Positions 26,311-35,421 of a stretch of DNA of 64,000 bases are shown one piece after another; the stretch's first letter is position 1; every line of letters starts with the position of its first letter. Made by a program: the position numbers and the translations under genes. Below the pieces are notes generated by a model. It ran no database searches, had not been told where the DNA came from, and worked only from the letters and a program-made list of their open reading frames with translations. Source of the DNA: Hyalangium minutum (GTDB taxonomy: Bacteria > Myxococcota > Myxococcia > Myxococcales > Myxococcaceae); assembly GCF_000737315.1 (NCBI RefSeq), contig NZ_JMCB01000017.1:62001-126000 (forward strand), written 5' to 3'.

Positions 26311-29300
26311 ATGGCCGCCTCTGACGTCTCCGGGACCCTCGACTTCGCCACCCCGCTCCTCTGCCTACAGCTCTGGAACGGGAACCACCAGGCGTTCCCT
26401 GTCGCCGCTCCGGCGCTGACCAGCCATGGGAGCAGCCAGGAGGACTGTCTCTCCGAACAGCGGCTCTTCCTGGAGGACTACCTCTCCCGCGCCGAGCCGG
26501 ATGTCCTCGCCCACTTCGCCATGCCCGGGCAGGCCCGCGTCGAGCTGATCGAGGTGCTGGCCCCTCGCGCCGATCTGCCCAAGCGCCTCTTCAAGCCGAA
26601 CACCCTCGAGCTCATCGCCGTGGTGGTGCCGCTGGCCCAGGAGACCTGGGTGTTCGTCCCGGCGCTCGACCACACCGTCTACGTGGCCAAGAACCAGGAC
26701 CTGCTGGAGACCGTCCGCGCCGACGTGGAGCGGCTCCTGGCCGCCCGCGAGCCGACCTCCCACGAGTACCTCCGGCTGCTGCCGCCCAAGTCCGTGTCCC
26801 TGGAGACGGTCCAGCTCAAGCTCCGGCGCCACGATGTGTCTGGCGAGAAGGCAAGGCAGGCCAAGAAGAAGCTCCAGGAGAAGCTCCAGCGCGAGCGGGC
26901 CCACGAGATCCTCCTCTCCGTCTCCACGCAGCTCCACGAGCGCGACGAGGCCAAGCGCGGCCCTCCGCTCATTGGCCGGGACACCGAGCTGGCGCTGGTG
27001 ACGAGCCTGTTCAGCGGAGAGAAGCGGCAGGGCGTGCTGCTCGTCGGCCCGGAGCTGGCGGGGAAGACGGAGCTGCTCTACGCCTGGCTCCGCGCCGAGC
27101 GGAAGGCAGGCCGGGAGCGGCGGGTGTACGCCACGAGCGGCTCGCGGCTCATTGCCGGCATGTCCGGCTTCGGCCAGTGGCAGGAGCGCGTCCTCCGCGT
27201 GATGCGCGCGGCGCAGGACCTGGACGCCCTGCTCTACTTCGAGAACCTGGGGGAGCTGCTCGCGCAGCACTCCACCGAGTCCATCGACCTGCCCGGCGCC
27301 ATGAAGCCCTTCCTGGAGGAGGGCAAGGTCCGGTTCATGGGCGAGCTCGCGCCGGAGTCGCTCGATCTGCTCGAGAGCCGGCACCCGGGCCTGTTCGCCA
27401 CGTTGACGCGCGTGCGCCTGGAGCCCTTGAGCGCGAAGGCCACCTGTGAGGCCCTGCGCACCCGCGTGGCCTGGCAACGGAAGATGGAGCCCACGCGGCC
27501 AGCCCTGGCCGACAACGCCGTGGAGCCGCTGGTGGAGCTGGCCGAGCGCTATCTCCCCAGCCGTGCACTGCCCGGCAAGGCGCTCAGGCTCTATGAGGAG
27601 ATGCGCGCGGGCCTCCAGCAAGAGCGCACGGGTGATGGGAAGGTCCCGGAGCTCACCCGCGAGCGCGTGTACTCGCTCTTCAGCCTGAAGACGGGCGTGC
27701 CCGAGTTCCTGCTGCGAGAGGATCGCGCGCTCCTGGCGGGGGATGTGGAGGCGTACTTCCGGCGTCAGCTCATCGGCCAGGAGCTGGCGGTGCGCCGCGT
27801 CGTGGAGACGCTGTGCATGGTGAAGGCCGGCTTGCAGCCCCAAGGCAAGCCGCTGGCCACGTTCCTCTTCGTGGGCCCCACGGGCGTGGGCAAGACCGAG
27901 CTGGCGCGGCTGCTCGCCACCTTCCTCTTCAACTCGCCCGAGCGCCTGTTCCGCTTCGACATGAGCGAGTTCATGGACGGCTGGTCCGCGGACCGGCTCA
28001 TCCGAGGCACCGACCAGGGCGAGGGCCTGCTCACGCGGCGCGTCCGCCAGCAGCCCTTCTGCGTGCTGTTGCTGGATGAGATCGAGAAGGCGCACCCCGC
28101 CGTGTTCGATCTGCTCCTGCAGGTCTGCGGCGAGGGCCGGCTCACGGACTCCCGAGGGCGCACCGCCTGGTTCCACAACGCCCTCATCATCATGACGAGC
28201 AACCTCGGCGCGTCCCACCGCCGCAGCCCCCTGGGCATCGGCGCGTCCGCCGCGGATGACACCACGCACTACCTGCGTGAGGTCCATAAGCACTTCCGGC
28301 CGGAGATGATCAACCGCATCGATCAGATCATCCCCTTCCACGCGCTCACCTCCGAGCAGGTGTCCGAGGTGGCGCGGTTCGGCGTGGAGAAGCTGCGGCA
28401 ACGGCGCGGCCTGCTCCAGCGGGGCATCACGCTCGACCTGCCGCCCGAGGCCACCACCGCCCTCGCCTCCTCCGGCTACCAGGAGGCCTACGGCGCCCGC
28501 GCCATGCGCCGCCACCTGGACCAGCAGCTCGTCGTGCCCGTGGCCCGCGCCCTCTCCTCGGCGGGACGTGAGGCGCAGGGCGGACGGCTGGAGATCACCG
28601 TGCGCGACGGAGGGCTCGACGTGCAGTTGCACAAGGGCAGCCCCAAGTCGGCTCGCAGCCAGATCGATGTGGTGCGCTCGCTCCAGAAGGAGCGCCGGGT
28701 CATCGACGCGATCTTCCGGCTCGACGCGGTGATTCAGCTCGAGGAGCAGATTGGCTTCCTGGTCGCCCAGCTCTCCCAGGGTGAACGGGACGAGAAAGGT
28801 CCTGGTTCGCTCTCGATCGCGAACCTGCGCGGCGAGCACCACCGCCTCGATGGGCTCTGGCGGAGCGTCCAGCAACTGCGCTCGGCGCTCGTGGCCGCCG
28901 AGGAGCTGGCGCTGCTGGCGCTGTTCGAGCAACAGGACGTCCAGCCCTTCGTGGAGGACGCCCAGCTTCAGATGCAGGCTCTCCGCCGGCACCTGCCCGC
29001 GGTGCTGCTCGCGCTTCAGCCCAAGCGGGACGACATCACCCTGATTGCCCAGGAGTCCGGCGAGACGCGGTGCCTCCACCGCTGGCTGGTGCCGCTGCTC
29101 GAGGACGCCCAGCGGCGCCGCTGGATTGTCGAAGGCCGTCCCTCCCTGACCAGCAAGAGCAGCGACCGCAAGCGCAAGTGGGACGAGCGGCTCGGCCCCG
29201 ACTCCCTGCTGAAGCGCCTGAACTCTGGAGACGGTCTCCGCGAGGTGCTCCTCTCCGTGCACGGACCGAATGCGGGAGTGTTCCTGGCCCTCGAGGCGGG

Positions 29301-35421: not shown

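Follow-up and report, generated by a model that had tools for sequence, protein, structure and literature searches.

A conserved Myxococcota trio of Clp-like double-AAA+ proteins, two with release-factor-derived tails: a candidate translation-linked machine

What kind of machine would be built from three different Clp-like ATPases encoded side by side, two of which end in what looks like a release factor? The question is raised by a locus of Hyalangium minutum (GCF_000737315.1, contig NZ_JMCB01000017.1), which we analysed within a window of 64,000 nt, that is, the whole stretch of DNA considered here (contig positions 62,001 to 126,000, forward strand); all coordinates below are window positions, and all features lie on the forward (+) strand. 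Three co-oriented double-AAA+ genes are found there, with exactly the boundaries given in the initial annotation: gene A (26311..29658, 1115 aa), gene B (29655..33116, 1153 aa) and gene C (33121..35421, 766 aa). Each encodes an N-terminal domain, a degenerate D1 and a D2 predicted to be active, and A and B continue into a release-factor-like tail; C stops right after its D2-small domain and is tail-less, as had been claimed. The start codon of B overlaps the stop codon of A (ATGA), with AAGGAGG upstream, and B and C are separated by a 4-nt gap (atcc). The GC3 of A, B and C is 0.91-0.93, the value expected for genuine genes in a 69% GC genome, and the call of gene A also draws on its ORF, Pfam and NCBIfam matches and orthologs in at least 23 loci. 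A, B and C are real genes, co-oriented and translationally coupled.

The AAA+ core places the three proteins near known Clp/Hsp100 ATPases. Each has two tandem AAA+ modules, of which the second matches the Pfam families AAA_2, with E values from 1e-40 to 1e-42, and ClpB_D2-small, with E values from 1e-11 to 1e-18, those for gene A being 2.8e-42 and 2.9e-11; the first module gives the weaker match in all three proteins and is alignable to the D1 of ClpA, ClpB and ClpC. NCBIfam ClpA/ClpB models score 306-321 bits, far under the equivalog cut-offs (993-1232 bits for ClpA/ClpB, and 885-1417 bits with ClpV included), and none of the three qualifies as an equivalog. Core identity among A, B and C is 33-35%, and they are ClpA/B/C-like double-AAA+ paralogs. 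A search for Clp_N gave no match in any of them even at E<=10, and the M-domain is absent, as the alignment to ClpB leaps from residue 382 to residue 523 (skipping 383-522) over only ~20 query residues; both absences had been reported before and hold. With ClpA and ClpC, which work with ClpP, the trio shares D1 and D2 without a long M-domain, AAA_2 and D2-small, and a contiguous alignment to ClpA residues 145-735; a ΦGF-type loop at the ClpP-docking position would be a further common feature. However, ClpA and ClpC are each a single gene with Clp_N, whereas the trio consists of three linked paralogs with a new N-domain instead, a degenerate D1 Walker B, a deleted GYVG D2 pore loop and, on two members, C-terminal tails of 350-380 aa. 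The best overall HMM and PDB scores for the trio D2 are to ClpB/Hsp104 (T. thermophilus ClpB 1qvr, 282 bits), but the trio lacks the M-domain, Clp_N and the GYVG loop and has a putative ΦGF loop, which ClpB does not have. All domains are under purifying selection, with dN/dS of 0.10-0.15 in the cores and 0.18-0.43 in the tails and N-domains (A N-domain, ~0.24).

The N-terminal domains of A (aa 1-220; 26311..26970) and B (aa 1-232; 29655..30350; basic, pI 10.2) are of one family-specific type that C also carries. Shallow hhalign comparisons failed to detect this relationship, and deep alignments were required, which gave probabilities of 95% (E 3e-8) for A against B and 94% (E 2e-7) for A against C. 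Among 13 diverse members no Pfam match was found, and PDB searches by sequence or profile also returned no match. The N-domain is private to this family, standing in the place of Clp_N.

In the D1 ring, the KYR-type and GYVG-type motifs of the D1 and D2 pore-1 loops were taken as defined previously (PMC8666677). The D1 module of A (26971..27705), delimited by its motifs and by alignment to ClpB and ClpC, has Walker A GPELAGKT (27046-27069), the pore loop AGMSGFGQWQER (27154-27189), which lacks the KYR tyrosine, and a degenerate Walker B, LLYFEN (27229-27249). That of B (30351..31064), whose motifs are conserved family-wide, has the deviant Walker A GPPGCGKR (30405-30428), the pore loop AGMSYVGDWEQR (30540-30575), in which the tyrosine is retained, and Walker B ILLIED (30615-30638), in which the acidic residues are swapped. 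In C (33781..34470; motifs and alignment to ClpB and ClpC), Walker A is GGPGVGKT (33823-33846), the pore loop is AGMVYLGMWQER (33949-33984), and Walker B is YLYVDR (34024-34047), with Arg in place of the catalytic Glu. The KYR-type tyrosine is thus retained only in B and C. None of the three has a catalytic Walker B of the form hhhhDE (YFEN in A, IED in B, VDR in C), and these variants are conserved across the family. D1 is hydrolysis-degenerate in A, B and C.

The D2 ring has a different character. The D2 modules, including D2-small, lie at 27706..28590 in A (AAA_2 and ClpB_D2-small; motifs conserved family-wide), at 31065..31964 in B (Pfam; motifs likewise conserved) and at 34471..35418 in C (alignments to ClpB 1qvr and ClpC 6em8). 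Walker A is GPTGVGKT in A (27874-27897) and GPTGTGKT in B (31242-31265) and lies at 34639-34662 in C; Walker B is LLLDEIEKAH in A (28066-28095) and VLLDEIEKAH in B (31434-31463) and lies at 34828-34857 in C. The D2 ATPase site is canonical in all three. The pore-1 loop is 5-6 residues shorter in A (RLIRGTDQGEGLLT, 27994-28041), B (RLTGDAWQPEGRLT, 31362-31409) and C (RLMEVGPGITSLAE, 34759-34806, a 6-residue deletion), and GYVG is missing from all of them; an aromatic residue in this loop is usually retained only in B. Because D1 is hydrolysis-degenerate and the GYVG loop of D2 is deleted, a classical threading unfoldase should not be assumed.

A second feature of D2 concerns the protease. About 9 residues after TSNLG, ΦG[F/Y/I/L] is conserved in the A, B and C types, in a loop that is shorter than in ClpC. 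It reads PLGIGAS in A (28228-28248), AMVGLRN in B (31590-31610), with VGIG or VGFG in most B orthologs, and PMGYGAE in C (34987-35007), where the G-Y aligns to G672-F673 of the S. aureus ClpC AGF motif. This AGF motif is a ClpP-docking motif (PMC12521514). Conservation of this putative ΦGF loop at the ClpP-docking position in all three proteins would point to a protease partner. No clpP or translation genes were found in the 64-kb window, and none lie consistently near the trio in the compared loci.

The tails of A (aa 761-1115; 28591..29655) and B (aa 771-1153; 31965..33113) are release-factor-like modules. That of A combines a long helical domain-1-like region with a domain-2-like α/β part and carries the motif LREVLLSVHGPNAGVFLALEAGVHR (29236-29310); B carries FFEGEAGLHVWQS (32739-32777) and VVRAYRFEPP (32940-32969). 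AlphaFold 2 modelled the A tail with moderate confidence (pLDDT 73, pTM 0.62) and the B tail at pLDDT 83 and pTM 0.80. When these models were searched with Foldseek against 350,542 PDB chains, the best 50 matches of each were all RF1, RF2, mtRF1 or PrfH, with best E values of 2.6e-7 for the A tail and 1.6e-6 for the B tail (1gqe) and a probability of 1.0 for both. Domain 1 and the codon-recognition superdomain of the class-I release-factor fold are present in both models, at TM-scores of only 0.2-0.4, which describe a local match across several domains, short of a rigid superposition of the whole fold. Compared with that of release factors, the domain-1-like helical part is longer, and it resembles a coiled coil.

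Sequence comparisons give faint yet specific support for the same fold in A. Its tail matches PCRF at E 0.0045 and 17.3 bits against a Pfam gathering score of 24, that is, under threshold, and sub-threshold PCRF matches were obtained for 9 of 20 diverse A-type members. With A-tail profiles, RF1 of T. maritima is matched at E values of 0.05 and 0.0011, the A-tail HMM aligns collinearly to E. coli RF1 (residues 9-151 and 160-215), and an RF1 fragment used in tblastn matched A-tails only in 657 kb of loci, which contain no prfA or prfB and hence offer this search no local positive control. The tail motif region '...G.nA...L..E.G.HR' aligns with RF1 'GKNAYGILKYESGVHR', and the Pfam, PDB-profile, tblastn, hmmsearch and hhalign signals are collinear and all fall at one RF domain-2 motif. 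Single-sequence searches of each tail against PDB sequences returned nothing, and global hhalign of the tails to RF1 was uninformative. In B, profiles against PDB and Pfam gave only chance coiled-coil matches, PCRF not being among them; since there is no sequence-level release-factor signal, the assignment of the B tail rests on its fold and on its homology with that of A, which hhalign detects at 77% probability and E 2e-5.

These tails have lost more than their catalytic motif. The initial annotation described them as release-factor modules without GGQ; the resemblance is borne out, but the decoding tripeptides and a whole domain are gone as well. GGQ is absent from the tails of all orthologs and no RF-1 Pfam match was found, and PxT, SPF and the GRIHTS motif are absent from both tails. 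The loop equivalent to the decoding tripeptide reads SDTGEKDD in A, where it is variable and acidic, and WQSTGRLP in B. Beyond domain 2 there remain only ~84 aa in A and ~100 aa in B, whereas T. maritima RF1 has 149 aa there, so each tail is too short for both domain 3 and domain 4. As to which of them is kept, hhalign threads the tail end onto a domain 3 with the GGQ loop deleted, and a weak second HMMER match together with an R-x3-F-x-P-P motif (RTYNFPQ in RF1) favours domain 4. With one domain missing and the decoding tripeptides gone, stop-codon recognition and peptidyl-tRNA hydrolysis by the tails are excluded. Both tails thus descend from class-I release factors, minus the catalytic GGQ, the tripeptides that read the codon and an entire domain. 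They share with RF1/RF2 the fold of helical domain 1 and the domain-2 α/β part, and differ in being fused to an ATPase. Five A-type relatives append to this tail a segment of the L7/L12 C-terminal domain (PF00542 positions 10-44, E 4e-9 to 3e-4), which is a second translation-derived element in some A-type tails.

We also found that the genes are conserved together, as the proposal in the initial annotation required. Among Archangiaceae, 23 loci show the order A-B-C, which is also seen in Nannocystaceae, in Polyangia and on other high-GC metagenome contigs, and nearly all loci over this large evolutionary distance keep it strictly, with 4-nt overlaps or gaps. The exceptions are a solitary A-type gene in one locus (L031) and another in which only B and C are seen (L024). 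Flanking genes differ from locus to locus; within Archangium, as within Hyalangium, the trio occurs once per genome and keeps its position. A contig scan by two peptide patterns under-sampled distant relatives, and this was corrected by a profile search against representatives. The family counts at least 145 representative clusters at E<=1e-30, whose annotations all go no further than 'AAA family ATPase' or 'ClpA/ClpC'. Among the 536 homologs of C at E<=1e-100, every named one belongs to Myxococcota. The same holds for every named relative of the trio: none was found in Planctomycetota or Bacteroidota, two phyla that the initial annotation had proposed to survey. Distribution within Myxococcota is patchy, with no Myxococcus or Corallococcus among the best 120 C-type matches; carriers include Sorangium, Chondromyces, Archangium, Cystobacter and Melittangium, and Myxococcus xanthus appears to be without the trio. 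Deviations peculiar to one subunit persist throughout the family: the D1 pore tyrosine is missing in A, GK-R is found in B, and Walker B differs per subunit.

The reading we prefer, with a probability of roughly 40%, is that of a heteromeric, possibly ClpP-coupled AAA+ machine that engages the translation apparatus via its release-factor-derived modules. A, B and C would be subunits of a Myxococcota-specific Clp/Hsp100-type two-ring machine and would co-assemble in one mixed hexamer, e.g., A2B2C2, with D2 as the motor; the conserved subunit-specific motif deviations fit fixed positions in such a ring. The release-factor-derived arms would extend outward at the D2-small rim and dock the ring onto the translation apparatus, be it at the ribosomal A-site, at the factor-binding region or via a partner of RF domain 1, and the ΦGF loops would couple the ring to ClpP, whereby a ribosome-bound or factor-bound target may be remodelled or degraded. 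Candidate roles are quality control, dormancy or development, and ribosome turnover. The most explicit version is doubtful, namely that a hetero-hexameric Clp-type machine plugs these arms into the A-site or factor-binding region and, driven by D2 and perhaps helped by ClpP, removes or degrades proteins bound to ribosomes, or even whole ribosomes, the arm of some lineages also bearing the L7/L12 factor-binding segment. Several observations count against the preferred reading: GGQ, PxT and SPF are lost, the A loop is variable and acidic, the tails fall below the PCRF cut-off, B gives no release-factor signal in sequence, and the TM-scores are low; the deleted D2 GYVG and a D1 unable to hydrolyse ATP are atypical for a processive unfoldase; and there is no consistent clpP or translation neighbour, the ΦG loop is shorter than in ClpC, and one A-type gene is solitary.

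The strongest competitor, which we regard as rather unlikely, keeps the release-factor ancestry and gives it a non-ribosomal job: the fold would have been exapted as an oligomerisation or regulatory arm (cf. the ClpB M-domain) or for other protein or RNA binding, the machine acting on a non-ribosomal client, ClpP-linked or stand-alone. The loss of every functional release-factor motif, the strong divergence of the tails with their variable and acidic loops, the long coiled-coil-like helical part, the lack of translation genes nearby and a tail dN/dS above that of the core would all suit such a history. Nevertheless, the multi-domain release-factor architecture is kept in >90 full-length representatives, the PDB matches to the tail fold are all ribosome-binding release factors, and some tails have acquired the L7/L12 segment.

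Less likely again is that A, B and C form three independent homo-hexamers with separate clients and are merely co-transcribed paralogs. To our knowledge, every Clp/Hsp100 ATPase characterised to date in bacteria forms homo-hexamers, and the loci with A alone or with only B and C would be consistent with subunits that work separately; the strict order and tight coupling in nearly all other loci, the private set of conserved motif defects in each paralog and the D2 aromatic residue usually kept only in B speak against it. A role in anti-phage defence or conflict, in which the trio would shut off or remodel translation once a cell is infected, was raised in the initial annotation and is improbable. 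The patchy occurrence, the variable flanks, the STAND, CHAT and kinase genes of the window and the resemblance of D2 to the ClpB-like DolB and PDC-M37B of PADLOC would favour it, but the PADLOC matches span only the generic AAA_2 module (partial D2), partner genes are absent, and genes for a nuclease, a toxin or a sensor do not accompany the trio consistently; moreover, the conserved single-copy position within Archangium and Hyalangium looks vertical and not island-like, and selection is purifying like that of housekeeping genes. That the tails are unrelated helical/β domains and their release-factor resemblance a modelling or search artefact is scarcely credible, for although the TM-scores, the A-model pLDDT and the individually marginal sequence matches could suggest it, two models from different alignments each retrieved only release factors and five kinds of sequence signal converge collinearly on one domain-2 motif.

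We know of no bacterial AAA+ unfoldase that carries a ribosome-factor mimic and of no bacterial Hsp100 ring made of three paralogs. Pex1/Pex6 and other heteromeric type-II AAA+ rings are likewise built from paralogs with two rings each, of which the D1 tier is inactive and the D2 tier active; they differ from the trio in being eukaryotic, in belonging to another AAA+ clade and in their established hetero-assembly, which for the trio is a prediction. Plant PrfB3 is a GGQ-less release-factor derivative. The same is true of mitochondrial MRPS35 (PMC6514570). Both provide a precedent for GGQ-less modules in RNA- or ribosome-linked, non-catalytic roles, but they are organellar, free-standing or ribosome-integrated, and not fused to an ATPase. 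In concept only, the trio also resembles Vms1-Cdc48 (RQC) and Dom34/Pelota-ABCE1, which pair an ATPase acting on stalled ribosomes with a module of release-factor type, one that has no catalytic activity in Dom34 (PMC6514570); those systems use the unrelated aeRF1 fold and separate polypeptides, whereas the trio has a bacterial-type release-factor fold covalently fused to a Clp-type ring. In agreement with the earlier view that no characterised system is like it, no published description of the trio was found in the literature searched, including a survey of release-factor evolution.

If the tails do dock on ribosomes, they would open a new route by which ribosomes are quality-controlled, turned over or made dormant, in a phylum whose development is triggered by starvation, and would be a natural case of tRNA/release-factor mimicry re-used for targeting. 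In its most explicit version, the machine would be a covalently fused bacterial counterpart of the ATPase-coupled ribosome rescue or turnover of the Vms1-Cdc48 or Dom34-ABCE1 type. Even with another role for the tails, the family is notable as a motor whose D1 tier is dead and whose D2 tier has lost the pore-loop tyrosine, a combination that challenges the standard threading model. Finally, a consensus scan alone picked up a terminator-like hairpin 3' of C (35554..35575), which is likely the operon end, and conflict-type genes of the STAND, CHAT and kinase classes abound in the 64-kb window.

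Gene A (26311-29658, + strand, 1115 aa), gene B (29655-33116, +, 1153 aa) and gene C (33121-35421, +, 766 aa) carry the signature of real genes in this DNA (GC3 0.91-0.93, GC2 about 0.44), in a window where long spurious ORFs are abundant because its G+C content is 69%. The stop of A and the start of B overlap as ATGA, with AAGGAGG 12 nt upstream, the B-C gap is 4 nt, and a terminator-like hairpin lies about 130 nt 3' of C. Pfam and NCBIfam class all three products as ClpA/ClpB/ClpC-like double-AAA+ proteins, with a strong second module (D2; AAA_2, ClpB_D2-small) and a weak first one (D1), and their cores (D1 plus D2) are 33-35% identical in pairs. 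The initial annotation had described just such a set of tightly joined, co-oriented double-AAA+ genes without Clp N-repeat or ClpB M-domain, and this description stands on the ORFs, GC3 and family matches: Pfam finds no Clp_N domain in A, B or C, the M-domain is skipped in the alignment to T. thermophilus ClpB, and ClpA aligns without a break. The N-terminal 220 or so residues of each protein match nothing in Pfam or among PDB sequences; with deep alignments these N-domains are mutually homologous (probability 95% for A-B, 94% for A-C and 46% for B-C), which indicates that the ancestor already carried one. C terminates directly past D2-small, beyond which A has 355 residues and B 383, so that C either lost such a tail or split off before the tail was gained.

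The resemblance of these tails to class-I release factors (RFs), also proposed initially, was recovered by PDB fold search for both proteins and by PCRF/RF1 sequence signals for A. Taken alone, the A tail matches PCRF below threshold (E 0.0045; 17.3 bits vs the cut-off of 24). A profile of 17 Archangiaceae A-tails matched residues 135-193 of T. maritima RF1 at E 0.05, improving to E 0.0011 with 20 diverse tails of A-type homologs, nine of which match PCRF individually and none the RF-1 domain; in a tblastn search with an RF1 fragment, which covered all 657 kb of the DNA fetched, A-tails were the only matches. An HMM of 47 A-type tails is collinear with residues 9-151 and 160-215 of E. coli RF1 (sequence identical to PDB 5j30; hhalign probability 46%, E 2e-4). 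At the sequence level the B tail gives no RF signal, but hhalign pairs it with the A tail as a homolog (probability 77%, E 2e-5). Both tails were modelled with AlphaFold2 (A: pLDDT 73, pTM 0.62; B: pLDDT 83, pTM 0.80) and the models compared with 350,542 PDB chains; the top 50 matches of each were exclusively RF1, RF2, mtRF1 or PrfH (best E 2.6e-7 for A and 1.6e-6 for B; about 350-385 aligned columns). The TM-scores against RFs were low (0.2-0.4), as would be expected when a multi-domain protein is flexible and lacks one of its domains, and thus the fold match leaves the global arrangement of the tails unestablished.

Unlike RF1/RF2, the tails of A and B lack both GGQ and PxT/SPF and do not hold domains 3 and 4 together. 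GGQ is absent from the expected place in the tails of all orthologs and representatives, in agreement with the earlier claim, and at the position of PxT/SPF-GRIHTS the A tail has a variable, acidic loop and the B tail 'WQSxG[RK]LP'. Past the equivalent of RF1 residue 193, where domain 2 ends, T. maritima RF1 has 149 residues, whereas the corresponding stretch is about 84 residues long in A and about 100 in B, so domains 3 and 4 cannot both fit. The tail end is threaded by hhalign onto domain 3 without the GGQ loop; a weak second HMMER alignment places it on 'IRTYNFPQNRVT', the start of domain 4, to which a conserved R-x3-F-x-P-P motif and an α7-like helix in B also point. From these sequence features we favour domain 4 over domain 3 as the survivor, and, whichever of the two it is, stop-codon decoding and peptidyl-tRNA hydrolysis by the tails are excluded.

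The paralog-specific motif deviations of the ATPase cores are kept across about 210 sequences. The D1 Walker B motif is hhhh-E/D-N/D/Q in A, x-D in B and D-R in C, the catalytic Glu being kept in none; the D1 Walker A of B reads GK-R, and the tyrosine of the D1 'KYR' motif is Gly in A and retained in B and C. Both D2 Walker motifs are canonical in all three, and the D2 pore-1 loop is 5-6 residues shorter than that of ClpB and has lost GYVG, with an aromatic residue usually retained in B only (motif definitions: PMC8666677). A ΦG[F/Y/I/L](G) motif about nine residues past the TSNLG sensor is common to all three paralogs, and HMMER aligns the G-Y of C with G672-F673 in S. aureus ClpC, part of the AGF motif that docks in the ClpP H-sites and is needed for ClpP binding (PMC12521514, PMC9035409). 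As a sign of ClpP coupling, this sequence motif is a lead and not proof. The trio is Clp/Hsp100 kin, yet it lacks several traits that define ClpA, ClpB and ClpC, with no Clp_N, no D1 catalytic Glu, no GYVG D2 loop and NCBIfam scores that reach a third of the ClpA/ClpB equivalog cut-offs.

Scanning one genome per species with sequence patterns gave 24 loci, 23 of them from Archangiaceae or related genomes (Hyalangium, Archangium, Cystobacter, Vitiosangium and 'Myxococcaceae' MAGs), and the window is closest to Hyalangium (85-93% identity). Wherever the contig permits, the A-B-C order and the same 4-nt overlaps or small gaps recur in 23/23, and the flanking genes differ from genus to genus. When 1.84 billion representatives were searched with a profile, 3049 proteins scored at E<=1e-3 and 145 of them at E<=1e-30, including 94 full-length representatives (1100-1240 aa) split evenly between A-type and B-type. 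Genomic contexts were fetched for seven: five hold the trio (a Nannocystaceae MAG, a Polyangia contig and three other high-GC contigs), one holds A and B on a contig ending within B, and one a solitary A-type gene. The expectation that the trio is kept together is therefore supported, both in the 23 loci and on distant contigs. The named homologs of the C type belong to Hyalangium, Archangium, Melittangium and Cystobacter and, at 52-61% identity, to Byssovorax, Minicystis, Chondromyces and Sorangium; since Myxococcus, Corallococcus and Stigmatella are missing from the best 120, the family is probably spread patchily through the phylum. All domains are under purifying selection (dN/dS 0.10-0.15 in cores, 0.18-0.43 in N-domains and tails). 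In a distant Myxococcales MAG (ONT assembly), the B homolog is split over three frames (L024:7572-11040) with no A gene within 7.5 kb upstream, and in the nanopore assemblies of C. fuscus NCWS and A. gephyra PVMSAZ (L022, L023) A, B and C carry frameshifts; such defects probably reflect assembly errors, not pseudogenes.

Taken together, the data show three conserved and coupled Clp-type paralogs that share an N-domain of their own and combine a dead D1 tier with an active D2 site whose pore loop is truncated; all three carry the ΦGF loop, and two of the subunits end in RF-derived tails. Public annotations call the family 'AAA family ATPase' or 'ClpA/ClpC'; a survey of RF evolution covers PrfH, ArfB, ICT1, MRPS35 and aeRF1-type families, with AAA+ fusion not among them (PMC6514570), and our full-text literature search found no description of such a trio or AAA+/RF fusion, so the initial view that no system like it has been characterised was upheld. 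We propose that A, B and C would form one mixed hexamer, that its RF-derived arms would engage the ribosome or its factors, and that the ring would be coupled to ClpP, a combined model to which we assign a probability of about 0.4. Within it, co-assembly of the paralogs is reasonably likely, some contact of the tails with the translation apparatus is slightly favoured, and ClpP as the partner is an even bet. The main rival, in which the RF fold was exapted for a non-ribosomal role, we consider somewhat less likely than the combined model.

For the translation-related reading, some A-type relatives may offer a second link. In five of them the RF-like tail is longer by about 35 residues ('KIEAIKLYRERTGxGLKEAKDYV'), and this extension, which the A of the window lacks, matches positions 10-44 of Ribosomal_L12 (PF00542; E 4e-9 to 3e-4), above the Pfam gathering score in two of the five. 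In L7/L12, translational GTPases dock on those helices. The extended proteins are P0037 in a trio (L026:10001-13555), P0166, the solitary one (L031:2918-6439), and fragments P0113, P0162 and P0167. In L031, where B and C are absent, the neighbours of the A-type gene (139-2921 and 6436-7965) are two predicted lipoproteins that are paralogs of each other (451 and 447 aa, 24% identity) and a protein of 509 aa that looks secreted; because all its genes overlap by 4 nt, this locus may be a variant module. In L026, a SNF2-family helicase gene (19257-22748, 1163 aa) starts 4 nt past the C-type gene and is followed by a Ser/Thr kinase, an arrangement seen in no other locus.

In the window, a multihaem cytochrome, an SLT-LysM transglycosylase and an FAD oxidoreductase lie upstream of the trio, and an ECF sigma factor, a GH18 chitinase, an unknown ORF, a weak Imm11 match, an AAA protein and a PEGA Ser/Thr kinase downstream; none of these genes is consistently linked to the trios of other genera. 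No clpP, prf or ribosomal gene is among the 33 window ORFs scanned, and PADLOC gave generic AAA matches only. The FAD-dependent oxidoreductase (24847-26268, +), between the SLT-LysM gene and A, looks like a lineage-specific insertion, because SLT-LysM directly adjoins A in the closest Hyalangium-like loci (L001, L004). A 467-aa ORF without Pfam match (38534-39937, +) overlaps a 272-aa ORF with the weak Imm11 immunity-protein match (39702-40520, +; E 6.5e-5), and the pair, whose gene calls are uncertain, may be a polymorphic-toxin/immunity remnant. The single-module AAA protein (AAA + AAA_lid_3, 598 aa) and the adjoining Ser/Thr kinase with PEGA domains (40525-42321 and 42340-44910, both -) are absent from Archangium loci and 73-93% identical in three Hyalangium-like loci, there also downstream of the trio. 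A TPR-CHAT protein (281-3712, -), a kinase-nSTAND1-FGE-sulfatase protein (4594-8661, +) and an ADYC-domain protein (8792-9841, +) form a cluster of typical conflict/signalling genes of multicellular bacteria, unrelated to the trio.
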